A DNA stretch of 64,000 nucleotides, taken from the NCBI RefSeq assembly GCF_023055435.1, contig NW_025964223.1:5022001-5086000 (forward strand). Direction: 5' to 3'. The stretch's first letter is position 1. Each line of letters begins with the position of its first letter. The DNA is from Haliotis rufescens. Lineage: Eukaryota. A program made the translations under genes and the position numbers. Positions 8,601-61,533 of this stretch are shown in pieces. The notes beneath the pieces are model-generated. The model worked only from the letters and a program-made list of their open reading frames with translations. It did not search any database and was not told the DNA's origin.

Positions 8601-11600
8601 ACGCACACCAACATCATCACAGAGGGTTTCGCCAAGTACAGTTGTACCATTTACAGCAACGTTATCTACACGTGCATCAGCGATGACTTTAGAAACAACA
8701 GCAGAAACCTCAACAGATACAATCATCACAGTAACATCACTGGGGTCAATAGCTGCGTCATCGGGAACGTCTCTAGTACCTATGGAGATCTCATCATTAC
8801 AGACACCGACGGGCACTTCATCATCTCAAGAACAAGTCGACATCTCAACATTACAAGTTCCAGGGGACATCTCAACATCACAAGTGGTAGGGGACATCTC
8901 AACATCACAAGTGATAGGAGACATCTCAACATTACAAGTTCCAGGGGACATCTCAACATCACAAGTGGTAGGGGACATCTCAACATCACAAGTGATAGGA
9001 GACATCTCAACATTACAAGTTCCAGGGGACATCTCAACATCACAAATGGTAGGGGACATCTCAACATCACAAGTGGTAGGAGACATCTCAACATTACAAG
9101 TTCCAGGGGACATCTCAACATCACAAGTGGTAGGGGACATCTCAACATCACAAGTGATAGGAGACATCTCAACATCACAAGTGGTAGGAGACATCTCAAC
9201 ATCACAAGTGGTAGGAGACATCTCAACATCACAAGTGATAGGAGACATCTCAACATCAAAAGTGGTAGGAGACATCTCAACATCACAAGTGATAGGAGAC
9301 ATCTCAACATTACAAGTTCCAGGGGACATCTCAACATCACAAGTGGTAGGGGACATCTCAACATCACAAGTGATAGGAGACATCTCAAAATCACAAGTGA
9401 TAGGAGACATCTCAACATCACAAGTATTAGGGGACATGTCAACATCACAAGTGTTAGGGGACATCTCAACATCACAAGTATTAGGGGACATGTCAACATC
9501 ACAAGTGTTAGGGGACATCTCAACATCACAAGTGTTAGGGGACATCTCAACATCACAAGTGTTAGGGGACATCTCAACATCACAAGTATTAGGGGACATG
9601 TCAACATCACAAGTGTTAGGGGACATGTCAACATCACAAGTGTTAGGGGACATCTCAACATCACAAGTGTTAGGGGACATCTCAACATCACAAGTGATAG
9701 GAGACATCTCAACATCACAAGTGATAGGAGACATCTCAACATCACAAGTGTTAGGGGACATGTCAACATCACAAGTGATAGGAGACATCTCAACATCACA
9801 AGTGTTAGGGGACATGTCAACATCACAAGTGTTAGGGGACATGTCAACATCACAAGTACCAGTGGGCATCTCAACATCACAAGTGTTAGGGGACATCTCA
9901 ACATCACAAGTGTTAGGGGACATGTCAACATCACAAGTGTTAGGGGACATGTCAACATCACAAGTGTTAGGGGACATCTCAACATCACAAGTGTTAGGGG
10001 ACATGTCAACATCACAAATACCAGTGGGCATCTCAACATCACAAACACCAGTGGACATCTCAACATCACAAGTGTTAGGGGACATCTCAACATCACAAGT
10101 ACCAGTGGACATCTCAACATCACAAGTACCAGTGGACATCTCAACATCACAAGTGTTAGCGGACATCTCAACATCACAAGTCTTAGGGGGCATCTCAACA
10201 TCTCAAGTACCGGGGGACATCACAACATCACAAGTATTCGTGGACATTTCAACATCACAAGTACTCGCGGACGTCTCAACATCACAAGTATTACTGGACA
10301 TCTCAACATCACAAGTACCGACGGACATCTCAACATCACAAGTGTTAGCGGACATCTCAACATCACAAGTCTTAGGGGGCATCTCAACATCACAAGTGTT
10401 AGGGGAAATGTCAACATCACAAGTACCAGTGGACATCTCAACATCACAAGTACCGATGGACATCTCAACATCAAAAGTATTAGCGGATATCTCAACATCA
10501 CGAATACCGACGGAGATGTCAACTTTACAAGTACTAGTGAACATCTCAACATCACAAGTGTTAGCGAACATCTCAACATCACAAGTACCGGTGGACATCA
10601 CAACCTCACAAGTACCGGTGGACATTTTACTATCACAAGTAATGACGACCTCCAAAACTGATAAAAGCGTTGTATCGGCAGTTGAAATATCAACATCATC
10701 TTCTGATTCACCAACTTTTGATGTGACAGCGCCTTCTACATCATCAGTTAGATATGTAATTTCTCATTCTTCTACATCAGCTACTGCTTTGGCATCAGCT
10801 TTTACATCATTAACACCCTCTGTATCCAATACAGATTCTACACCTTCCACATCCTCATCCATAAAAGTGACATTACTCTATTCATCATCAAATATGGATG
10901 TGGCCAGAGCTTCTACATCATCAACACCAGATGGGAAAGTGTCTTCTATATCCACTTCAGTTGTGACAGCGGCTTCTACGCCATCAACAATATACGTGAC
11001 GTCACCTTCTTCATCATCAATTTCAGATGTGACATCGTCTTCTATATCACGTTCACGTATTGCATCGCCAACCACATTGCCAACAAAATATGTGAAATGC
11101 CCTTCTACGTCCCCGGAAGATGTAACGTCGTCTCCAACATCATCAACTGAAGAAATGATGCCATATTCTATATCACCAAATACAGCTGTGACGTCACCTT
11201 CACCATCATCTACATATGTGACATCACCTTCCACATCAACTGCGGATGTGACATCGCCTTCAAACTCATCGACTACGGATATTATTTCGCCTTCTATGTC
11301 AGCAACAACAGATAAGACATCATATTTTACAATATCGACTATGGATGTGACACCGCCTTCATCAACAACTCCAAAATTGACATCACCCTCAACATCAATA
11401 AGCTCTTTTGCGACACCAGGTGTGTCCCCGACGTCTTCAACGTTCTATTCTACTTCTGAATCGACAAGTACAGGAACAAGTCCATCAACTAATGTAACAC
11501 TTATATCAACCGCCACCACTTCTCCTGTGACATTGGCGACCATACGTTTCACGTCATCAACGTCACCGAGGACGACGTCACCTACACCAACAGCAAACAG

Positions 11601-15002: not shown

Positions 15003-15781
15003 TACACCTGTATAGTTAACGTGGTACACCTGAACAGATAACAGAAAACACCTGAATGGTGATGTATCTGTAAAGTTAACCGGAAACCCCCATTTATCGT
15101 TAACCAGAAACACCTGTACAGTTAACCTGATACACCTGTAAAGTTAACCGGATACATCTTTATAGTTAACCGGAAACACCTGTATATTTAACCTGATACA
15201 CCTCTATAGTTAACATAATACACCTGTATAGTAAACATGGTAGACCTGTATAGTTAACCGGATACGCCTGTATAGTTAAACGGATACATCTATATAGTTA
15301 ACATGGTAGACCTGTATAGTTAACCGGATACGCCTGTATAGTTAACCGGATACGCCTGTAAAGTTAACCGGTTACACCTGTATAGTTAATGGGATACAAC
15401 CTTAGTTTTAACCGGATACACCTGTATAGTTAACCGGATCCATCTGTATTGTTAACCGGAAACACCTGTGTAGTTAATCCGATACACCTGTATAGTTAAC
15501 GAATACACCTGTATAGTAAACCGTATACACCTCTTTAGTAAACCGGATACATCTGTATAGTAATCCGGATACACCTGTATAGTAAGCATAATAGACCTGT
15601 ATAGTTGACCGGATACACCTGTATAGTTAACATGATACACCTGTATAGTTAACATGATACACCTGTATAGTTAACATGATACACTTGTATAATTGACCGA
15701 ATACACCTGTATAGTTAACATGATACACCTGTATAGTCAACATGATACACTTGTATAGTTGACTGGATATACCTGTATAGT
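15003..15781. repeat. 22-bp tandem minisatellite (ACACCTGTATAGTTAACCGGAT), about 35 copies
   Basis: Seen directly, starting immediately after the putative poly(A) signal of the mucin gene. Confidence 0.9.
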
Positions 15782-15980
15782 ACCAGACCAACATCAGTGT
15801 GTGCTGTATATGGTCTGACTGAGTCAAATTGAAGCTGTGTTGATTCAAGAAAAATCAACATTCCATTTCTCTTCTATTTAAATCGAACAAATAAAGCATC
15901 TGACAATGCAATAAACACGTAGTTTGTTTGTTGTTTAGCGCTATTCCGACTATACGATGGCGTTCTGTAAATAATCTAGA

Positions 15981-19710: not shown

Positions 19711-19906
19711 GAAACGGTTTTACGAGATTTACGATTCTGTCAAATAAATTCGGAATATATCTCAATGACACATGTACAACAAACTATCAGTTCCACTTGT
19801 GAATGTTTCAAAAATAACTAATTGAGTTGTCAAGTGGCTGGCGAGATAATGTCAGAAAGATCATTGCATCCGGATTTGGTGCGTGTAACCATCGACACAT
19901 CCATGC

Positions 19907-19970
19907 TATATATACCCGACATGTACCAGTCCATCCACAACATTGTCCACTGATATCCAGAACTGCAAAG
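19907..19970 (+). promoter_or_regulatory. TATA box and non-coding exon 1 of peptide gene A1
   Basis: GCTATATATACCC (TATA at 19907), then a short exon ending GCAAAG|GTAGGT at 19970/19971. The same TATA motif and a near-identical donor lie upstream of A2, A3 and B2. Confidence 0.75.
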
Positions 19971-20189
19971 GTAGGTGTCTTTTTTATGAACGTGTATAAT
20001 ATCTATCCTAATAGTCCTCTGCTGTTTCGGTGTGATGCGAAAATTAATATTTGTATGTCCAATCAGGTAGTCGTGTTAAACCAATAAATATTGTATTTTC
20101 TGTTATGGTTATAATGTTGCTGTATTTAACAGCGGCGGTATAAATTAAATTACTGACAAACTGCGATCATAGTGATCCTCTATTTAGTG

Positions 20190-20546
20190 AGGTGAGGTGA
20201 GGTGAAATTGGGTTTAACGTCGCGTCCAAGATTATTGCACTTATATAGCGACGTGCATGCACGTGTATGTGTGTGTTTTGCTGCTTGTACTAGTCCGGAC
20301 TGATGCCGATTTATAGTGCTAGCTCACTGAGATACCATGCCGCAGTTTAACATGAATACCCCACTCAGACACAGTATACTGACTCCGAGCCGACCAGTCC
20401 TTGTTTTATCCCCTTAATGACGAGCGCCAGACAGGGTAACAACAAGTACAATCTTTTAACGTCTTTTTGTATGACGCGGCCCGGGCCGAACCCTGGACCT
20501 TCCGCTCTCCGGGCGGACGCTCTACCACAAGACCACGGAGGCGGTC
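20190..20546 (-). mobile_element. tRNA-derived SINE in intron 1 of A1, (CACCT)n tail
   Basis: Reverse strand begins GACCGCCTCCGTGGTCTTGTGGTAGAGCG...GGTTCGGCCC; 14-bp TSD TCCTCTATTTAGTG at 20176-20189 and 20547-20560; the empty site is visible in the paralogous segment near 31950-31970. Confidence 0.9.
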
Positions 20547-20785
20547 TCCTCTATTTAGTGGCCATTTACAATTTAGATCCAAATGCTGTAATGTATCTGT
20601 GCATATTACATATTGTGTTTAACTTGACAGGATAATCTGATTTTGAAGGATTGGTCCTAATCATAAAAAAAAGTTATTTTAAAAGCGAGTATTAGTCGTT
20701 CTCATGACGTGTTGTTAAATTGCTGGGACAAAGTGCTCACAACAACTTTTAAATGGATCACTCAAACTATCTTATATGTACCTAG

Positions 20786-23124
20786 ATGAAGATTGCCCTC
20801 GTCCTCCTGTTCCTGACTGCCATGGTGGCCCTGCCCGGAACCGATTCCTGGGGTATTCGTTTGCCACGTTTCAGGAGTATTGTACGTGCGGTTGGAGGTG
20901 CCGTCAGGCGCGTCGCTTCGACAGTAGTCAATGCCGGGAAGAAAGTTGTCTCAACTGTCAAAAAGGTTGGAGAAGCAATTAAATCTGGTGAGCGCATTTC
21001 TCTTGACAACAAGTGGTACTTTTGTGAAGGTTCTTAAGAGCAGGACATTTGTTATGAACGTAAATATGTTTGTCTGGCTAGTGATAGAATAAGGAGTATC
21101 CCCATTTTCTAATGTATTCCATAAGTATATTTTAATGTGAAGTTTACAAGATATACGGCATTTCCTTTGGATGTGAGGCCGGTCACATGGCCGCGTAACT
21201 GATGTTCATAAGTCTATGAACGAGACAATTGGACGTCCATACGTGTTTAACGAGATTGTATCTTGAATGACGTAAACACTGACGGAAACTCATTGGGAAT
21301 CTAAAGCGCAAATAAACACAGAAGCATTGTTTCTGATCATTTTGACCTTTCAATCTTGAAATCTGCATTTCGGCATACATTGGGCAGAGAGTTTGACTGC
21401 ATAATCGTTCACAAATACCCTCGCAGCGACCAATCAAAGTAAAACTAAACGAAAAAATGCACTTCTCAACCGTCACAGTATCGCCTCGATCCGTGTCAAG
21501 ACAGGCAGATACAGTCAGGTGCAATCTATGACTTTCCCTTAGTATCCATTTACAATCAACTTTCAAAGATCGGACCAATTGATCAATGATGACTAACACT
21601 TGTAATTGCCACAGGTTCATCAACAAATGCGGACATCTTTTCCGTCACGTTTATCGTGTCGTCCACGTACTGAATGTATATGTATTACAACGCGCTGTCA
21701 TTGTGACTTACGTACAAACCTATCTCATCTAATGATGACTCAAAGATATTTGAAGATGTTTGTTGTAAACAACCACAAACGATGTCACTGTAGAACAATG
21801 TAAGGATACATGAGCTCGTGCCACGTCTCCTGTCGAAGAACTGCTTCATTCCGTAAAACTTGTAGTTGTATGGATGTCAGTGTAAACATGAAGTCACACG
21901 TACTACATAAAAATCGTATATAGCTCGACATCCTTCGTCTTGAAAAATAGTGATATAAAAAATCATAACTGCCTTTCACTTTGAGTGAGTTCATTGGAGT
22001 ATAAACATTCATAGAGTGAGGATCAAACATTGTATGAACGTCTTCACAAGCTCCATTCCGTGCAAGCAGTTCATTATAAACTCACGTTGTTTTACCAAAA
22101 GAGATGTCTAGCGGCATCCAGGTGATAATAATATATAATCTATATATTTTCCGATAAGTGACAATGTATGGTTAGATTGAAACGGATGAATATCCACAAA
22201 AATGTCGAGCGCGTCCAGGTGAATGAGTCTTGTGTGGGTAGCTATCTATCTACATGAATACCTTGGATGATAAGAGCAATTATTTGAGAACTAAATATTA
22301 TCAATTAGAAGAGCTTTCAACACCGTCGTTAGAAACGTACATAATTTGGGATAGGTCGCAACTTATGCTTCGAAAGATAGGATAAGTAAGAACTTCCAAA
22401 GTGTGTTGCATGGTCTAGCTACCTGACATCTCATCCCAACTGTAGACCACACTTGTCGGGAGGTTATAAAATAGACTTGTACTTATTTCCATCACCAGGT
22501 AAACGAGACGTGAGCGAGTTTGATGTGGACGGCGACGGTCAAGTCAGTGACGACGAGATCATGATGGTGCTGGCAACCAGAGACGTGGATGACCTTGTCC
22601 AGGATGGTTACATCACAGGTAAGGGAGATAACCACTCTAGTGTAGAAGAGACTTCAAGTACCACTTTGAGTAGAAATATATAGAAATGTCATCATCAACG
22701 TCATCAACGTCGACATACTTAATTTCCACAATGGGCCCATCTATTCCTGGCATACATAGCAATAAGACCTTCTTGTGTTTCAAGAAGCAGACAAGGAAGA
22801 CATCAGCCTCTACCAGCGCCAAGTCCGGGAAGCTGAAGACCTCGATCTGGGTGAGACGTTAAACCCCAACATTAAAGTTGCAGAATACATATGCACATGC
22901 AAAGTGCATATGACTCAACTCACACACACCTCACCTCACATCTCCTTTTAATCTACACTATTTGTACATTCCTGATGATAGGCCATACCAATGATTTAGC
23001 AACTGATAATTTGGGTCAGGCGCTGAGGTGGAATTGAAATCCTCAATAGCTGTTGTGTAGTCACCCTAAATTCTCAATTAAATTGTAAACTCTTCTACAC
23101 ACCAACACACACCGATACACAATT

Positions 23125-23160
<36 letters not shown>

Positions 23161-23291
23161 GCACGCACGCACGCACGCAAGCACGTATGCACGCACGCAC
23201 GCATGCGCGCGCACACTGTGTAATAGACGATTTGTGTACATTCTCATATGATCGTTCTTTAATTTTATATTTATTTTCGCTTTCAGAATAA
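20786..23291 (+). CDS. Peptide gene A1: secreted cationic amphipathic peptide precursor with GKR site and acidic EF-hand propeptide (130 aa)
   Basis: Coding exons 20786-20987, 22499-22618, 22785-22850, 23287-23291 (GT-AG, all phase 1); AATAAA 23363-23368. Protein: MKIALVLLFLTAMVALPGTDS / WGIRLPRFRSIVRAVGGAVRRVASTVVNAGKKVVSTVKKVGEAIKS / GKR / DVSEFDVDGDGQVSDDEIMMVLATRDVDDLVQDGYITEADKEDISLYQRQVREAEDLDLE*. Confidence 0.88.
21140..22041. mobile_element. Non-coding interspersed repeat in intron 2 of A1, homologous to 2930-3856
   Basis: Long collinear similarity; it accounts for much of the 1.5-kb intron 2 of A1 versus 195 bp in A2 and A3. Confidence 0.7.
23128..23214. repeat. (CA)n/(CACG)n microsatellite in the last intron of A1
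   Basis: Seen directly. Confidence 0.9.
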
Positions 23292-23862
23292 CCGTGCTGA
23301 CAAGCGGAACTCAAGATGCCCAACTCATCTGTTATCCATGTAACAAGTAGAGTATGGACATAAATAAAGTCGTAAATAACAAATGTGTGTTTGTAATACT
23401 GGAAGTACTTCAAATGTAGTTAGGACCGCTGGTGTAGCACAGTGGCATAAGAGTTCATTCCTCGCGAATGGTCCGGTTTCGATTCCACACATGGCATGGG
23501 TACAGTGTGTGTAGCCAATGTCTGGTAGAATCCTACAAAAACGGCGTAAAAACATGCAACCTCACTCAAATTTGTTGTTTTGCTAACGAGTTAAAAAAAG
23601 AACCCTGAAGGTGAGTCTGAAGTGATGAACGCTGAAACCTGAAAACTTAAAATTCCCTTCCACTCACACCCTGATGTAACCGAAATACTGTTAAAATCGA
23701 AGTTAAACCAAACTCGCTCACCTCACCATCTTTTATTGAGTTTGTAATAGTGCTTTTCTCAACTTCCTTCCTATGTCTAATAAGTCTCTAAAGGAGTCAG
23801 TCAGCTTCTCTGGCTTCTCATGTTACCTGCACAGTGCCCTGGACAGTAACGCTGAACTGGTA

Positions 23863-30791: not shown

Positions 30792-31335
30792 GTCGAGTAA
30801 TATGCTAGCAGCTCAAACCTTTGGTTTCTACATATCACAACTTTGAGGAACAATTACGTATGGTCTTTCTACCACGATTTTACAGATCGGCATACAACTA
30901 TTGCTCAATTTTTTATCAGTATTCAGGGCCTTACTAAAGCTTTTAAACAGTTTTATCGAAGATATCTTGAGGACATTTCCAGATTTAATGCATCAGTGAC
31001 ATAAAATATGTCCGATGCAATTACCTTTTATGACTTGTACCATATGTTCCTGTGGGTTTTGTTCAGGTGGGCCCTTGCCTTTTCATGCGTTTGTGACGGG
31101 TGACACCGGCCGGGGTAGGATAGGCTCACATTTTCGCGAGCATCTGGCCTCATCACCATTAGATAGTGATTCATAAACAAATTAATTCAGGGTTCATCTC
31201 GGTGACACATATGAATCACACTGCCAGTCCCACGCTATGAAGACTATTAACTGAGTTGTCAGATGGCTGGCGAGATAATGTCAGAAAGATCATAGCATCC
31301 AGATTTGGTGCGTGTGACCATCAGCACATCCATGC

Positions 31336-31401
31336 TATATATACCCAACATGTACCAGTCAATCCCCAACATTGTCCACTGATATCCAGAACTATCCAAA
31401 G
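31336..31401 (+). promoter_or_regulatory. TATA box and non-coding exon 1 of A2
   Basis: GCTATATATACCC; donor CAAAG|GTAGGT at 31401/31402. Confidence 0.75.
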
Positions 31402-32189
31402 GTAGGTGTCTTTTTTTATGAACGTGTATAATATTTATCCTGTTCGTCCTCTGCTATTTCAGTCCAATGCAAACATGAAATGTACTTCAAGAAAATAATT
31501 ATGTGTATGTCCAAATTGGTACCTACAGTCGGTCGTGATTTACCAATATATATTACAATGGCTGTAGTTGGCAGAGTTGTGATGTAATAAACTGAATCAA
31601 ATCAGTGTTATTTACAAGAGTCGGTGTCAACGGAATTTCATTAAGTTATTGTCAAAATGATATCATAGTGATCCACTGTCAAGTGTTCATTAACAATTAG
31701 GCCTAGACGGTGTAATTACTGGTCTCTGAGTAAATTACATATTGTGTTTTGAGATGTCAGGATAATCTGGTTTTGTTGGATTCGTCCTAATCATAAACTG
31801 GTAATTTGGGGACGTGTCATTTTAATGACGTGTTGTTAAATTGCTCGGACAAAGTGCTCACAACTCTTAAATGGATCATTCCAAAATGATTCCATGTACT
31901 CGTACCTAGATGAAGATCGCCCTCGTCCTCCTGTTCCTGAAATCATAGTGATCCTCTGTTCAATGGCCATTCACAATTTAGACCCAAACGCTGTAATTTA
32001 TCTATGCATTTATCATATTGTGTTTAACTTGACAGGATAATCTGGGTTTGAAGGATTGGTCCTAATCATAAAAAAGTTATTTTAAAGGCGAGTATTATTC
32101 ATTCTAATGACGTGTTGTTAAATTGCTGGGACAAAGTGCTCACAACAACTCTTAAATGGATCATTCCAAACTATCTTATATGTACCTAG

Positions 32190-33546
32190 ATGAAGATCGC
32201 CCTCGTCCTCCTGTTCCTGACTGCCATGGTGGCCCTGCCCGGAACCGATTCCTGGGGTATTCGTTTGCCTCGTTTCAGGAGTATTGTACGTACAGTTGGA
32301 GGTGCCGTCAGACGCGTCGCTTCGAAGGTAGTCTCCACTGTCAAAAAGGTTGGAGATGCAATTAAATCCGGTAAGCGCATTTCTCGTGACAAGGGGTATA
32401 TTGTGAAATTGTTTGAGAGAACGCCATTTGTTATAAAGGTAAATATTTTGGGATAGGTGACAACCGAAGTTCATCTCATAGTCCTAGTCAGGCTAGCTAA
32501 AATCTAACCACGCTGTGCTTTGTTGGGAAGCCAAAAAATAAAAACGTAACTATTTTCATGAACAGGTAAACGAGACGTGAGTGAGTTTGACGTGGACGGC
32601 GACGGTCAAGTCAGTGACGACGAGATCATGATGGTGCTGGCAACCAGAGATGTGGATGACCTTGTCCAGGATGGTTACGTAACAGGTAAGGGAGATAACC
32701 ACTCTCGCGTAGAAGAGTCACGAGCCTTCTTACTTTAAGTACTACTCAAATTTAGGGAGGAGTAATTTAAATATATTTTTTTCATCTATGTGAAAGGAAG
32801 ATATTTTATTTGCATAATAGGCGCAACTGTTTGAATTCCATGGCATACAAAGCTATAAAGTCGTCTCGTTGTGGTTCCAGAATCAGACAAGGAAGACATC
32901 AGCCTCTACCAGCGTCACGTCCGTGAAGATGCAGACCTCGAGATGGGTGAGACGTTTAGCCCTACATGATAGTTGTAGAGTCAATATACATACGTTAACA
33001 TTCAACAGGATGGAACATGGTTTCAGTTAAATATCACATATTTAGGCATTAACTACTAGTATCTGATTTGAAAATGGGATTGATGTCCATTTACATATAT
33101 GCATATAACATTTCATTGATCTTTTCGTAAAATGTAAACACGTGACAGTATGTCTTAAACACGTGAACATGGAGTGTTACTGATTTTAAGATAAGTCCAT
33201 TAAAATTATATCAAACGTATGGACAACATTCCATAACCTTATATTTTCACAACAATTTCTAAATGTTTGCTCATTTCTTAAACTGGGCCGATCCTGTGGA
33301 CAAAATGAATATACCTAAATAATGCTAAATGCTTTTTAGTCTTGTTTTGTTATGTTCCTCAAAGATTGTAAATGTTCCAAACGTTGCCTGCAGGTATCAG
33401 AAATTCTTTTTCAACCCATATAAATACAGTGTCAATCAATACACATTCGCACACTGGTTTATCTCATTAATATCTGTGTAAACTTGATGATGTGTGTACA
33501 TCCTTTACATAGTATTGACAAATATCTATTATCGGTTTCAGAATAA
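32190..33546 (+). CDS. Peptide gene A2 precursor (123 aa)
   Basis: Exons 32190-32370, 32566-32685, 32881-32946, 33542-33546; AATAAA 33615-33620. Mature peptide WGIRLPRFRSIVRTVGGAVRRVASKVVSTVKKVGDAIKS, then GKR, then DVSEFDVDGDGQVSDDEIMMVLATRDVDDLVQDGYVTESDKEDISLYQRHVREDADLEME*. Confidence 0.85.
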
Positions 33547-41965: not shown

Positions 41966-43921
41966 ATGAAGATCGCACTCGTCCTCCTGGTCTTGTCTGT
42001 CGTGGTGGCCCTGCCCGGAGCAGATTCCTGGCGAGTAAGAAGAATAGTTCGTGCTGTGGCTAGAACGGCGACAAGGGTTGCCCGTACTGTAGGCAGGGCT
42101 GTTGTTCGTGTCGTCGGTGAGTAGGTTGTTTCATACCATATAACATCAACACAATGTTGGCTAACCGTGCCCACGATAGTCCCCCATTACTCGTCCCCGG
42201 ATGATGCGTTCTGCGCTCATAATTTCAGTCACCGTTTGCCTGGTTCAAACAAGATTATTTACAGGCAGTCCTTATAAAGCTGGAATAATACACACTGGGG
42301 AATTAAACAACATTCAGTTTCACACTGAAGCGGAATCATGTCGTGTCGGGTAGAAATGGTGGTGTAGGAAAGTTGTTTTCTAAAGTCTGTTTTAAAATTA
42401 ATTAGCTACAAATATAATGAAGAAACGATCTCAGGTACAGCTGATGTTGCAGGCATTGTCTCAGGGCTCTCTAGTTTCTAGTTTTTTTCAGCAAGTATCT
42501 TTGAATTATATAAAGTTTGTACATACCTAGGTAAGCGAGATATGACTGTGGGCGACATTGATGATGACGTTGATGTCAGTGACAAGGAGATACTGGAGGC
42601 ATTGGCAACCAGAGACGTGGAGGACCTCATCGAGAACGGCTTCATCTCAGGTAAAGGATGCCAATACCTTCTGGGGGTTACTGTCTCGTTTTGGCGCATA
42701 CACGGGAAAGCGTGGACCAAGCTGTGATAAACTGTCGAATTGGAGTAATATTCAGTTCAGTCAATCATCTCCTCCTGCCATCCATGGCAGACACTTAATT
42801 AATCAGGTGTAAATTCGTCAAGCAATGGTAATACCGTGAATGGTTCTCACTCAATTGGGTTCCAAGAACATATGTCACCCTCATTAAATTTCTTGATTGT
42901 ATTTGTCGAAACAGGAAATGGTATCAACTTTAGCTGTTTGACTGTAATACTTTTAATTTAAAGCCATATATGTTATATCATTTCTGTATTTAAGTTCCTT
43001 AAAGTTAAATTGTTGTAGTCAATGCTTGTAAAACATCACTTCACCTGCCTGATCATATGTTTTTAAAATGTTATTGTTATTATTGTTCATTTTGACCGCA
43101 AAATCGTGAAAACCATGAAATCACATGTAGTCTTCTCCTTTTGTTTAAAGGGGCAGACAATGATGACTTCAGTCTCCACCAACGTCAACGCAGAGAGGAT
43201 TTGGATCACGAGGGAGGTAATGATACAATGATTCAAAGTTTTGAACGAGTCCTCCAAGTACATTAGGATCTTCCGTAAGAGAAGCAGTCTATGCATTCCT
43301 GGTCTAAACTACCTGAACTGAATACTAAGAAAGCCATGGCATGGTACTTAAATATCACAGGTGGTTACATCTACTCAGCCCAACGGTTGCTAGGCATATG
43401 CATTGGAAGGAATCGCATTCTTTTCAGTACAGTAGTGGCATTGATCATGCAGTCAAACACACGGTACATTGGCTTTTGGCGTGTTGAACGTACATGACTC
43501 CTCTGCTGACCTACGATATGGACTACGTATGCTGAGGGCATTCTCGATTGTCCAGTGTATGTCTCCTTTCTACTGGACCAATTTCCCATCCACTGATTCG
43601 TGTCGGAAGTGACGTCACCAACCCCATCGTGTCAATAACCAAGTTTATTCTCTCATTTGTGTCATTGGGTTGGACGACTATTTCTAGAATCGTGTCATTC
43701 TAATTGTTCTGATGATGATATGGAACGTGGCGTATTGGCCAAGAGTATTTATCAAATAATCGACACTCGAGGATGATCTGAGAGGTAAGGGATTGGTATT
43801 TAACTGTGTAGTCAGCAATGTTCCAGCTATATCACGGGGCAACTGGGGATGATAATACGCGACAAACAGGCGGAGATGACATTCATGGATACAGTTCTTA
43901 TCTCCCTTTTTTCCAGAGTGA
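41966..43921 (+). CDS. Peptide gene B1 precursor (113 aa); ORF intact but promoter/exon 1 deleted, possibly silent
   Basis: Exons 41966-42116, 42531-42650, 43151-43216, 43917-43921; AATAAA 43993-43998. Protein: MKIALVLLVLSVVVALPGADS / WRVRRIVRAVARTATRVARTVGRAVVRVV / GKR / DMTVGDIDDDVDVSDKEILEALATRDVEDLIENGFISGADNDDFSLHQRQRREDLDHEGE*. Confidence 0.8.
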
Positions 43922-50631: not shown

Positions 50632-51144
50632 GTAGGTGTCTTTTTATATGAACGTGTATAATATTTATCCTGTTCGTCCTCTGCTATTTCAGTCCAATGC
50701 AAACATGAAATGTACTTCAAGAAAATAATTATGTGTATGTCCAAATTGGTACCTACAGTTGGTCGTGTTTTACCAATATATATTACTGTATATGGCTGTA
50801 GTTGGCTGAGTTGTGGTGTAATAAACTGACATCAAATCAGTGTTATTTACAAGAGTCGGTGTCAACGGAATTTCATTAACTTATTGTCAAAATGATATCA
50901 TAGTGATCCACTGTCAAGTGTTTAATAACAATTAGGCCTAGACGGTATAATTACTGGTCTCTGAGTAAATTACATATTGTGTTTGGAGATGTCAGGATAA
51001 TCTGGTTTTGTTGGATTCGTCCTAATCATAAACTGGTAATTTGGGGACGAGTCATTTTAATGACGTGTTGTTAAATTGCTGGGACAAAGAGCTCACAACT
51101 TTTTAATGGACCATTCCAAAATGATTCCATGTACTCGTACCTAG

Positions 51145-52503
51145 ATGAAGATCGCCCTCGTCCTCCTGTTCCTGACTGCCATGGTGGCCCTGCCCGGAAC
51201 CGATTCCTGGGGTATTCGTTTGCCTCGTTTCAGGAGTATTGTACGTGCAGTTGGAGGTGCCGTCAGACGCGTCGCTTCGAAAGTAGTCTCAACTGTCAAA
51301 AAGGTTGGAGCAGCAATTAAATCCGGTAAGCGCATTTCTCGTGACAAGGAGTATATTGAGAAATTGTTTGAGAGAACGCCATTTGTTATAAAGGTAAATA
51401 TTTGGGGATAGGTGACAACCGGAGTTTATCTCATAGTCCTAGTCAGGCTAGCTAAAATCTAACCACGGTGTGCTTTGTTGGGAAGCCAAAAAATACAAAC
51501 GTCACTATTTTCGTGAACAGGTAAACGAGACGTGAGTGAGTTTGACGTGGACGGCGACGGTCAAGTCAGTGACGACGAGATCATGATGATGCTGGCAACC
51601 AGAGATGTGGATGAGCTTGTCCAGGATGGTTACATCACAGGTAAGGGAGATAACCACTCTCGCGTAGAAGAGTCACGTGCCTTCTTACTTCAAGTACTAC
51701 TCAAATTTAGGGAGGAGTAATTTAAATATATTTTTTTCATCTATGTGAAAGGAAGATATTTTATTTGCATAATAGGCGCAACTGTTTGAATTCCATGGCA
51801 TACAAAGCTATTAGGTGGTCTCGTTGTGGTTCCAGCATCAGACAAGGAAGACATCAGCCTCTACCAGCGTCACGTCCGGGAAGATGCAGACCTCGAGATG
51901 GGTGAGACGTTAAGCCCTACATCATAGTTGTAGAGTCAATATACATACGTTAACATTCAACATGATGGAACATGGTTTCAGTTAAATGTCACATATTAAG
52001 CCATTAACTACTAGTATCTGATTTGAAAATGGGATTGATGTCCATTTACATATATGCATATAACATTTCATTGATCTGTTCGTAAAATGTAAACACGTAA
52101 TGGTATGTCTTAAACACGTGAACATGGAGTGTTACTGATTTTAAGATAAGTCCATTAAAAATGATATCAAACGTATTGACAACATTCCATAACCTTATAC
52201 TTTCACAACAATTTCTAAATGTTTGCTCATTTCTTAAACTGGGCCGATCCTGTGGGACAAAATGAATATACCTAGATAATGCTAAATGCTTTTGAGTCTT
52301 GTTTTGTTATGTTCCTCAAAGATTGTAAATGTTCCAAACGTTGCCTGCAAGTATCAGAAATTCTTTTTCAACCTATATAAATACAATGTCAATCAATACA
52401 CATACACACACTGGTTTATCTCATTAATATCTGTGTAAACTTGATGATTTGTGTACATCCTTTACATAGTATTGACAAATATCTATTATCGGTTTCAGAA
52501 TAA
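51145..52503 (+). CDS. Peptide gene A3 precursor (123 aa)
   Basis: Exons 51145-51325, 51521-51640, 51836-51901, 52499-52503; AATAAA 52572-52577. Mature peptide WGIRLPRFRSIVRAVGGAVRRVASKVVSTVKKVGAAIKS, then GKR, then DVSEFDVDGDGQVSDDEIMMMLATRDVDELVQDGYITASDKEDISLYQRHVREDADLEME*. Confidence 0.88.
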
Positions 52504-59594: not shown

Positions 59595-61533
59595 ATGAAG
59601 ATCGCACTCGTTCTCCTGGTCTTGTCTGTCGTGGTGGCCCTGCCCGGGGCAGATTCCTGGGGAATAAGAAGAATAGTTCGTGATGTGGCCAGAACGGCGA
59701 CAAGGGTTGCCCGTACTGTCACGAACACGGCTTCAAGGGTTGTACGTACCGTTGGCAGAAGGCTTGTTGTTGGTGAGTAGGTTGTTTCTTGTATACCATA
59801 TTACATCGACACAATCTTGGCTAACCGTGCCCACGATAGTCCCCCATTACTCGTCCCCGGATGACGTGGTCTGCGCTCACCGTTTGCCTGGTTCAAACAA
59901 GATTATTTACAGGCAGTCCTCATAAAGCTGGAATAATACAGACTGGGGAATTAAACAACATTCAGTTTCACACTGAAGCGGAATCATGTAGTGTCGGGTA
60001 GAAATGGTGGTGTAGGAAAGTTGTTTTCTAAATTCTGTTTTCAAATTAATTAGCTACAAATATAATGTGTCAGCTTGTTGTGCAGATGGAATGACCGGAA
60101 CAAGTGTTAGGGAACATCGTATTCAAAATAAGGAATATCAAAATATTAAAGCTTCAAGACGAACAGGAAATCTATGCATAGAAATCTACTCTTTTGTATT
60201 TATGCATAGGTAACTTTTTGAAAGGGAAGGGGCCCAAATAAGCAAAATGCTCTCTCAGTCAATTTTAGCGCCTACACCAACATACGTCTGTGTGAGGGGA
60301 TCGTGGATGTGTGTGTGTGTGTGGGTGTGGGGGTGGCCGGATCCCTTGAAGAAACGATCTCAAGTACAGCTGATGTTGCAGGCATTGTCTCAGGGCTCTC
60401 AAGTATCTTTGAATTATATAACGTTTGTACATACCTAGGTAAGCGAGATATGACTGCGGGCGACGTTGATGATGACGTTGATGTCAGTGACGAGGAGATA
60501 CTGCAGACACTGGCAACTAGAGACGTGGAGGACCTCATCGAGAACAGCTTCATCTCAGGTAAAGGATGCAAATACCTTCTTGGGGGTACTGTCTCGTTTT
60601 GGCGCATACACGGCAAAGCGTGGACCAAGCTGTGATAAACTGTCGAATTGGAGTAATATTCAGTTCAGTCAATCATCTCCTCCTCCTGCCATCCATGGCA
60701 GACACTTAATTCATCAGGTGTAAATTCGGCAAGCAATGGTAATACCGTGAATGGTTCTCACTCAATTGGGTTCCAAAAAACCATGACATCACATGTAGTC
60801 CTTTTGTTTAAAGGGGCAGACAATGATTACTTCAGTCTCCACCAACGTCAACGCAGAGAGGATTTGGATCACGAGGAAGGTAACGTATTTCCCTTGATGC
60901 AATGATGCATTCCTGGTCTAAACTACCTGAATACTAAGAAAGCCATGGCATGGTACTTATATATCACCGGTGGTTACATATACTCAGCCCAACGGTTGCT
61001 AGGCATATGCATTGGAAGGAATCGCATTCTTTTCAGTACAGTAGTGGCATTGATCATGCAGTCAAACACACGGTACATTGGCTTTTGGCGTGTTGAACGT
61101 ACATGACTCCTCTGTTGACCTACGATATGGACTACGTATACTGAGGGCATTCTCGATTGTCCAGTGTATGTCTCCATTCTATTGGACCAATTTGCCATAC
61201 ACTGATTCGTGTCGGAAGTGACGTCACCAACCCCATCGTGTCAATAACCAAGTTTATTCTCTCATTTGTGTCATTGGGTTGGACGACTATTTCTAGAATC
61301 GTGTCATTCTAATTGTTCTCAGAATGATGATATGGAACGTGGCGTATTGGCCAAGAGTATTTATCAAATAATCGATAATCGAGGATGATCTGAGAGGTAA
61401 GTGAATGGTTTTTGACTTTGAAGTCAGCAATGTTCCAGCTATATCACGGGGCAACTGGGTATGATAATACGCGACAAACAGGCGGAGATGACATTCATGG
61501 ATACAGTTCTTATCTCCCTTTTTTCCAGAGTGA
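59595..61533 (+). CDS. Peptide gene B2 precursor (122 aa)
   Basis: Exons 59595-59772, 60439-60558, 60814-60879, 61529-61533; AATAAA 61605-61610. Mature peptide WGIRRIVRDVARTATRVARTVTNTASRVVRTVGRRLVV, then GKR, then DMTAGDVDDDVDVSDEEILQTLATRDVEDLIENSFISGADNDYFSLHQRQRREDLDHEEE*. Confidence 0.87.

Follow-up and report, generated by a model that had tools for sequence, protein, structure and literature searches.

How can a cell that makes a membrane-active cationic peptide keep the peptide harmless until it is released? Textbooks point to an acidic pro-piece without structure, but five genes of the abalone Haliotis rufescens suggest that the pro-piece may also be a Ca2+-binding type of module. 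These genes are found in a 64,000 nt stretch of contig NW_025964223.1 (positions 5,022,001 to 5,086,000, forward strand), referred to here as the window and numbered from its first letter. The window is animal DNA with a GC content of ~0.39 and two N runs, and it has five tandem genes of one family, A1, A2, B1, A3 and B2, all on the + strand. In the A genes a Gly-Lys-Arg (GKR) processing site is followed almost immediately by an EF-hand-like loop. An original prediction, made from the letters of the window, took this loop for a possible Ca2+-gated inhibitor or processing switch. The analysis below indicates that the loop is an EF-type loop under selection, which is well supported at the sequence level, and it favours Ca2+ as a structural cofactor of the pro-domain over Ca2+ as a switch.

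The features of the gene A1 are as follows.

19907-19914, + strand: TATA-like box of A1, recognised in the sequence
19907..19970, + strand: A1 non-coding exon 1 together with the TATA-like box, ending at 19970 before GT
20786..20987, + strand: A1 exon 2, with the signal peptide (21 aa), the 46-aa cationic peptide without Cys (+10) and the first nucleotide of the GKR Gly codon
22499..22618, + strand: A1 exon 3, with the last two bases of the GKR Gly codon, KR, DVSEF and EF loop 1
22522..22557, + strand: A1 EF loop 1, DVDGDGQVSDDE, residues 76-87 of protein P0001, matching PROSITE PS00018
to 22618, + strand: 3′ part of A1 exon 3, with 17 residues, the first 3 residues of a dead loop 2 and the first nucleotide of the codon for Glu108
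22785..22850, + strand: A1 exon 4, with the rest of the dead loop 2 (EADKEDISL, to 22810), then the acidic C-terminal part
23287..23367, + strand: A1 exon 5, with the two bases that complete the last Glu codon, TAA at 23289-23291, the 3′ untranslated region and AATAAA near 23362

A1 is spliced and transcribed as modelled. RNA contigs from 4 public runs were compared with positions 19800-23420; they were placed at a likeness of at least 90%, and close paralogues may contribute to their depth, which was not used for expression ranking. The exons are covered and the introns are almost bare, except where intron 1 carries a tRNA-derived repeat. Contigs of all four runs contain both the exon 2/3 joint (20986>22498, shiftable by 1, GT..AG) and the exon 3/4 joint (22616>22783, shiftable by 2, GT..AG), and at the exon 4/5 junction an RNA joint lies within 2 nt of the predicted one in run X6 only. 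The exon 1 region has a conserved block shared with A2 (31248-31479), and contig depth is seen in the bin 19921-20041 in runs X2 and X4. Contig depth over A1 is very high in X1 and X2, depth being a poor measure of expression. The H. rufescens RefSeq protein P0001 (130 aa, with the end ...DLDLE) is identical to the exon model and matches exon 3 at 100%; it is named only “uncharacterized protein”. The precursor displays a 21-aa signal-like start, a 46-aa Cys-free peptide with a charge of +10, the GKR site and a 60-aa tail with a net charge of −17, and it is probably a secreted precursor of a positively charged, microbe-killing peptide.

Intron 1 of A1 has a tRNA-derived insertion at 20190-20550 that resembles a short interspersed element, with none at the matching place in A2. 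RNA contigs on this insertion reach a depth of >1e5 with many variants, as from a very abundant transcribed repeat family, and a second, similar tRNA-like stretch is present at ~23420-23500.

Loop 1 is identical in A1 (22522-22557), A2 (32589-32624) and A3 (51544-51579). The predicted 12-residue loop 5 residues after KR is found in all three copies with the strings and positions originally given, and only DVSEF separates it from GKR. The corresponding exons of the other four genes are as follows.

32566..32685, + strand: A2 exon 3, with the same loop 1 and ...DGYVT (protein P0002)
51521..51640, + strand: A3 exon 3, with the same loop 1 and ELVQDGYIT (protein P0007)
42531..42650, + strand: B1 exon 3, with GKR, DMTVG, then DIDDDVDVSDKE; Gly6 is replaced by Val, and there is no match to a Pfam EF-hand or to PS00018
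60439..60558, + strand: B2 exon 3, with GKR, DMTAG, then DVDDDVDVSDEE; Gly6 is replaced by Val, and there is no EF-hand match

An EF loop was taken to have oxygen ligands at positions 1, 3, 5, 9 and 12, Gly at 6, and hydrophobic residues at 8 and 13. With the PS00018 pattern A1, A2 and A3 match and B1 and B2 fail at position 6 (Val), and the three A loops are the only matches among 127,996 six-frame residues of the window. In a Pfam scan EF-hand_1 matches exon 3 of 3/3 A copies (E 1.4e-5 to 4.2e-5) and 0/2 B copies, the A matches lying just under the family cut-off. A Dockerin-type loop was considered and rejected, as Dockerin_1 reaches only E 0.085-0.13 in 2/9 proteins.

A string of this kind could also arise by chance in an Asp-rich spacer, where negative charge would be the sole role and no specific Ca2+ site would be present. 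The acidic composition does lift the odds of the pattern, to 0.57-0.74% per propiece: shuffling the 37 residues of exon 3 that follow KR yields it in 2,844 of 500,000 cases (0.57%), and shuffling the 58 letters of exons 3 and 4 yields it in 3,719 of 500,000 (0.74%). Identity among A1, A2 and A3 is uninformative by itself in this respect, because the identity of A2 and A3 is 91-93% across kilobases of sequence, in introns as well as exons. The informative conservation is that from distant relatives.

Eleven close copies of exon 3, of which 7 are of the A type and 4 of the B type, are found in this genome in a span of ~140 kb, and loop 1 is invariant in the 7 A copies despite synonymous differences. 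The ratio of nonsynonymous to synonymous differences per site (pN/pS) of exon 3 is 0.46 for A versus B, 0.17 among the A copies and 0.98 among the B copies (very few changes); exon 3 is under moderate purifying selection. Capture of the exon from a calmodulin-like gene was also considered. A genome search with A1 exon 3 gives the 11 cluster copies and one weak match (E 1.67), with no recent donor seen, and this origin was rejected.

Relatives were sought with proteins and profiles. The first protein search used exon 3 alone, as part of an unspliced 97-aa open frame, and work on whole precursors used database proteins. The exon 3 search gives 9 database proteins, each annotated as “uncharacterized protein”, from H. 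rufescens, H. cracherodii and H. rubra. A first profile, built from Haliotis rows only (8 A proteins, with B exons as separate rows) and run against 1.84 billion representatives, finds 10 proteins at E<=0.001, including the B-type P0010 and P0015 from H. asinina. It also finds two proteins of the vent snail Gigantopelta aegis, P0011 (E 6.6e-12) and P0018 (E 8.6e-4). Gigantopelta belongs to the Neomphalina and Haliotis to the Vetigastropoda, two different gastropod subclasses whose split is of Palaeozoic age. A second search with a mixed alignment gives 21 proteins at E<=1, and the family falls into five groups: Haliotis A, B and C, and Gigantopelta G1 and G2. The C group comes from other Haliotis loci, none of them in the window; its proteins have loop 1 deleted and GR or AR in place of GKR.

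Several matches were not accepted as members. The tunicate (Styela clava) protein P0013 (180 aa, E 1.2e-4) has a similar signal, an Arg/Lys-rich front and an acidic tail. Its profile match covers positions 1-63 only, that is, the signal and cationic part without an EF loop, and it is likely a case of convergence of precursors that resemble those of antimicrobial peptides. In P0014, P0016 and P0017 the match is confined to the loop region, and these are repeat proteins with no relation to the family. P0006 was left out of the protein alignments numbered A1, A2 and A3, and P0003 was left out of alignments A2 and A3. P0006 (H. cracherodii RefSeq, 137 aa) has GKR twice with 14 residues between (ISLDKKGYFCE...), and it probably represents intron 2 sequence retained after exon 2 through a mis-predicted splice.

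The Gigantopelta proteins supply the distant comparison. All six show GKR, exactly 5 residues, and an EF loop, which reads DLNKDGHVDL[KE]E in G1 and D[TI]NMDGV[VI]D[QE]AE in G2. In a gapless alignment of the 50 tail columns after GKRD, 8 columns are identical across A, G1 and G2. EF positions 1, 5, 6, 8 and 12 account for 5/5 identical columns, versus 3/45 among the other tail columns (Fisher p=2.6e-5). Loop position 3 holds D or N and position 9 holds S or D, all of them residues that can act as ligands; positions 2, 4, 7, 10 and 11 vary freely. This pattern is the signature of selection for an EF-type coordination sphere.

The same alignment bears most directly on the chance explanation. The A copies do lie under the Pfam cut-off, the B and C proteins do without a canonical loop, and between A and B the loop codons show no stronger constraint than those around them, all of which would fit a fortuitous string. 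Against this, the five EF positions are identical and positions 3 and 9 are ligand-competent in A, G1 and G2, with 42/45 other tail columns differing; G2 has a pair of loops that match the pattern, spaced as in abalone paralogues; and two G2 proteins exceed Pfam cut-offs. A chance origin of the loop is thus considered very improbable. EF-hand_1 is found at E<=0.01 in 13/19 family proteins (A 7/7, G1 3/3, G2 3/3, B 0/1, C 0/5). Of these two G2 proteins, P0023 is above the cut-offs of both EF-hand_1 (25.8 vs 25.4) and EF-hand_6 (25.1 vs 25), and P0020 is above that of EF-hand_6 (25.8 vs 25).

A genome search with P0020 gives 65 matches in H. rufescens, in clusters on five other contigs and elsewhere on the same contig. 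Of 30 paralogue loci fetched, 25 were parsed and 5 were not. All 25 parsed exons show GKR, 5 residues, D.N.DG.ID.SE, 17 residues, 3 residues and a phase 1 end before GT, a design with the same length and phase as A1 exon 3, and in 22 of them an acceptor 159-185 nt downstream completes a second loop. The spacing of 5 residues between KR and the loop is kept in every relative that keeps the loop, i.e., Haliotis A and B, G1, G2 and the 25/25 parsed loci. The cleavage site and the EF module are inherited as a unit, because GKR and the EF module are on one exon. It should be added that the link from A to the other abalone clusters is weak by exon 3 alone (L012 with E 1.67; P0020 versus A exons with E 0.33-0.93). 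Two of the loci, L017 and L023 (G000:C445:44210961-44231768), have the EF loop DLNEDGNIDQSEV with no GKR ahead of it in the open frame (...DIQNDLA[ST][AV]D...), and may be members that are processed at another site or have another exon boundary.

The open-access articles searched (main texts) gave no account of this family, and three peptide motifs of the family are in no open-access paper searched. Judged by its sequences, it is an undescribed, large gastropod peptide family with an EF-hand extension of the type known from mussel mytimycin.

The original prediction also pointed out a second, degenerate loop across the exon 3/4 junction. A degenerate site does cross this junction, but the register given for it is 6 residues too early. 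The two registers in A1 exon 3 are as follows.

22591..22618, + strand: exon 3 part of the loop 2 originally proposed, DLVQDGYIT (residues 99-107); EAD continues at 22785-22792
22609..22618, + strand: exon 3 part of the remnant of the true second EF site, YIT and the first nucleotide of the codon for Glu108 (residues 105-108)

The stretch originally proposed, D99-D110, reads DLVQDGYIT|EAD in A1, DLVQDGYVT|ESD in A2, ELVQDGYIT|ASD in A3, DLIENGFIS|GAD in B1 and, in B2, which the original prediction did not list, DLIENSFIS|GAD (the bar marks the intron). It spans the exon 3/4 junction, begins 23 residues after loop 1 and, in A1, fails PS00018, with Val at position 3. It is ruled out as the second loop by the gapless Gigantopelta alignment and by the intron position shared with the abalone paralogues. 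The G2 second loop, DADGNNEVAVDE, falls without gaps over the remnant in A1, where it covers residues 105-117 (YITEADKEDISLY). In P0020 the second loop, DADGNNEVAVDEF, matches the pattern and lies 29 residues after the start of the first loop, and a second loop 29 residues downstream is found in 3/3 G2 proteins and in 22/25 parsed abalone paralogues. A typical paralogue loop is DEN|GDSNVSVEEF, with the intron after loop-2 position 3, and the A1 equivalent is YIT|E. Because the paralogue exons share the length and phase of A1 exon 3, the intron appears to split loop 2 after its third residue across the superfamily. From these alignments the true second site is Y105-L116, which starts 29 residues after the start of loop 1, and D99-L100 belongs to a conserved stretch ahead of it. 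In A and B the second site (YIT|EADKEDISL in A1) is without ligands and has Leu at position 12, i.e., it is dead; across A, B and C the ligands of the true second site are lost, with Y, F or Q at position 1 and L or N at position 12.

The charges of the precursors agree with the proposal in the original prediction that the acidic piece masks the peptide electrostatically. In all 20 family proteins the mature part has a charge of +6 to +13 and the tail of −9 to −17, with 13-23 Asp and Glu in tails of 50-72 residues. The mature part is 22-46 aa long and has no Cys in 17/20 proteins and one Cys in three G1 proteins. The negative pro-pieces of defensins likewise balance a cationic, membrane-active peptide until proteolysis; pro-pieces of the defensin type are not known to have a Ca2+-binding motif, and they are N-terminal to the peptide.

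The reading that we favour, and hold to be somewhat on the probable side, is that the tail forms a small compact EF-hand-pair pro-domain that masks the cationic peptide, with Ca2+ as a structural cofactor and not a switch. Loop 1 of the A genes would bind Ca2+ and would stay occupied along the whole of the Ca2+-rich secretory pathway. The folded tail, with its strong negative charge, would neutralise the amphipathic cationic peptide and so spare the cell that makes it, charge being one means to this end, and the tail might also clasp the basic helix as calmodulin does melittin. (Ca2+-calmodulin is able to grip melittin or mastoparan.) A convertase would cut after KR, a carboxypeptidase would trim KR, and the Gly would be used for C-terminal amidation.

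Several observations weigh against this reading. The loop codons have a pN/pS of 0.41 in the comparison of A and B, compared with 0.40-0.55 for the rest of exon 3, and thus show no extra constraint. The B copies, with Gly6 replaced by Val, and the C-type proteins, with the loop deleted, apparently manage without a canonical loop 1. Against an EF-hand_1 cut-off of 25.4, the A copies score 23.2-24.7 bits on exon 3 and 21.0-22.4 at full length. When P0001 is compared with all solved structures the best matches are calmodulins, and loop 1 aligns with the fourth EF-hand, DIDGDGQVNYEEF, but single stretches are weak (best i-Evalue 0.78), the whole-sequence E of 5e-5 being a sum over four hands. AlphaFold2, run on P0001 (16 alignment rows) and P0020 (19 rows), gave no confident model. 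The mean predicted local distance difference test (pLDDT) is 52.5 for P0001 and 52.1 for P0020, the loops are below 50, and no helix enters loop 1. A helix from loop position 10-12 and a coil ahead of loop 1 are drawn in this region of pLDDT <50, and a helix is predicted at low confidence in the cationic peptide. A search of the ESM Atlas gave no usable match. The loop spacing is also compact, with 17 residues between the loops, and the Pfam pair model aligns 47 residues to 56 profile positions (~9 dropped); with so short a linker, the fold may depart from that of a standard EF-hand pair. The signal peptide was judged by eye rather than with a predictor, and antimicrobial activity, cleavage point and amidation are read from sequence only.

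The position of the loop so close to the cleavage site is what led to the idea of a Ca2+ gate. According to this idea the entering helix of loop 1 would run through GKR into the end of the cationic peptide, and Ca2+ occupancy would order or expose the convertase site or control the grip of the tail on the peptide, so that cleavage or release would be set by Ca2+ and pH, either in the granule or in sea water. The invariant 5-residue spacing (Haliotis A and B, G1, G2 and 25/25 parsed loci) and the placement of GKR on the EF exon, not on the peptide exon, fit such a gate. HMMER aligns residues 62-75 of P0001 (peptide end, GKR and DVSEF) with the entering helix of the first calmodulin hand, with identities at I, K, S, F and D, and in the C type the loss of the loop accompanies a change of the site (GR or AR for GKR). 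The latter, however, is a single evolutionary event, and the B genes retain GKR with a non-canonical loop. A Gly at position −8, and a Gly-Gly ahead of KR in G2, disfavour a helix, and both AlphaFold2 models show a coil from GKR to loop position 9, to which little weight can be given at pLDDT <50. Moreover, the precursor meets no low-Ca2+ compartment, and convertases themselves need Ca2+. The endoplasmic reticulum, Golgi, granules and sea water are all Ca2+-rich, and because this holds for the whole secretory route, a constitutively loaded site is favoured over an on/off gate. A gate is held to be improbable, and in our view a Ca2+ switch is less likely than a constitutively Ca2+-loaded pro-domain.

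The acidity of the tail might instead serve sorting. An acidic Ca2+-binding tail could aggregate at the Ca2+ and pH of the trans-Golgi, like granins, and route the precursor to storage granules, with neutralisation as a secondary effect. The tail is strongly acidic in 20/20 proteins, the gene is transcribed (exons 2-4 in RNA contigs of 4/4 runs), and an amidation signal is typical of granule-processed peptides, all of which is compatible with such a tag. Low-affinity, high-capacity binding needs no single specific loop, yet the ligand positions are conserved, and we consider sorting as the main role quite improbable.

A further explanation turns the precursor around. The tail itself would be the product, a small secreted Ca2+-binding peptide of mucus or shell, with the cationic part as its partner or pro-part. 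Secreted EF-hand proteins of similar size have been reported from the mantle and linked to shell formation, as outlined in PMC10741955 and PMC3120837. Among them are Hdh-SMP5 of the abalone mantle, with 134 aa and three predicted EF regions from residue 36 (PMC10741955), and PFMG1 and EFCBP, small secreted EF-hand proteins of the pearl-oyster mantle linked to shell formation (PMC3120837). The tails considered here resemble these proteins in being small, secreted and acidic with EF-hand regions. The design of Hdh-SMP5 is different, however, with its EF regions starting at residue 36 and with no cationic peptide or dibasic cleavage site in the description given in PMC10741955, and on this architecture it was rejected as a published member of the family. 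In addition, A and B have one dead site and C has no canonical loops, yet the cationic part stays at +6 to +11. That the tail is the product is accordingly regarded as very doubtful.

For the favoured Ca2+-loaded pro-domain, the closest published system is, by analogy of design, mytimycin of mussels. As described in PMC8004829, mytimycin has a signal peptide, a 54-aa antifungal peptide with 12 Cys, a dibasic site and a 75-aa anionic EF-hand extension. The same paper describes the extension as conserved, as probably gained in the form of an exon and as being without a known function; exon 1 is non-coding, and one variant is reported without both the EF region and the dibasic site (PMC8004829). 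The EF-hand-like domain is also named in PMC3210125. The A proteins share with mytimycin the signal (by eye), the cationic peptide and the dibasic site directly before an anionic EF-hand extension, and A1 shares the non-coding exon 1. Unlike the 54-aa mytimycin peptide with its 12 Cys, the mature peptide of abalone and Gigantopelta is linear, has 22-46 aa and 0-1 Cys, and ends in an amidation Gly. Mytimycin is from a bivalve and has a 75-aa extension, in contrast to the 50-72-aa extension of this gastropod family, and the likeness is one of architecture; mytimycin is absent from the 10 proteins found at E<=0.001 with the Haliotis-only profile.

Myticalins, as presented in PMC5577615, are a multigene group of linear Cys-free cationic peptides with Gly plus dibasic processing, amidation and an anionic C-terminal pro-region. 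The abalone precursors are like them in the signal, the linear Cys-free cationic peptide, the Gly and dibasic site, and the anionic C-terminal pro-region; no sequence similarity to myticalins appears among the database matches of the protein and profile searches. Extensions of mussel antimicrobial peptides other than that of mytimycin are described as without a defined structure in PMC8004829.

Compared with canonical EF-hands (PF00036, PF13405, PF13499; calmodulin), the loop has the same D1, D/N3, D5, G6, hydrophobic 8, S/D9 and E12, a helix begins near loop position 10 (AlphaFold2, low confidence), and in G2 and in most abalone paralogues each domain has two loops, as in an EF-hand pair. Unlike the EF-hands of calmodulin, the tail is presumably secreted and is tethered to a cationic peptide, with the loop only 5 residues after the cleavage site; and unlike a canonical EF-hand there is no clear entering helix, and the second site is dead in A and B.

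A bolder form of the Ca2+-loaded pro-domain, which we hold to be unlikely, is that the EF-hand pair acts as an in-built, Ca2+-loaded clamp that grips the tethered lytic amphipathic helix in the manner of calmodulin, with the convertase and amidation site in the entering segment. The exon with cleavage site and EF-hand would then be an ancient molluscan cassette, shared by abalone and the vent snail, multiplied to dozens of genes and perhaps joined in mussels to the unrelated Cys-rich mytimycin. If this were true, the clamp cassette would be a general strategy, not described before, by which host-defence peptides are kept in check.

Membrane-active cationic peptides must do no damage to the cell that makes them before they are released, and in the abalone family and mytimycin the pro-piece is a conserved module of the Ca2+-binding type joined directly to the cleavage site. 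The module is no quirk of one gene, as two gastropod subclasses retain its ligand positions and the same spacing to the cut site, and it is present at ~65 places in the abalone genome. The family also contains natural “mutants”, i.e., the B genes with Gly6 replaced by Val, the dead second site of A and B, and the C type with loop 1 deleted. This series is a ready-made test of the part, if any, played by Ca2+ binding in masking, sorting or processing. The family may in addition offer an extensive, still unexplored supply of linear amidated peptides from an animal that is farmed and prone to bacterial disease.

Some other features of the window are of interest. In A2 (31658-32220) and A3 (50893-51175) a ~280 nt tandem duplicate with 79% identity lies upstream of the real exon 2. 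It includes the acceptor as well as ~30 nt from the start of exon 2 (ATGAAGATCGCCCTCGTCCTCCTGTTCCTG), which creates a decoy start exon in intron 1. At 61320-61400 in B2 a CAG acceptor precedes AATGATGAT..., a possible extra 3′ exon; the corresponding region of B1 (43700-43790) is without this acceptor through a small deletion, and both frames still end in Glu and a stop.

Two tandem arrays lie ahead of A1. A long array of a 27-nt unit, approximately at 8649-10700, has at least 66 in-register copies with 63-94% identity to the reference, and the region shows a strongly negative GC skew and an AT skew of 0.2. An array of a 22-nt unit is found at 15017-15869, with at least 23 copies and a 109-nt interruption.

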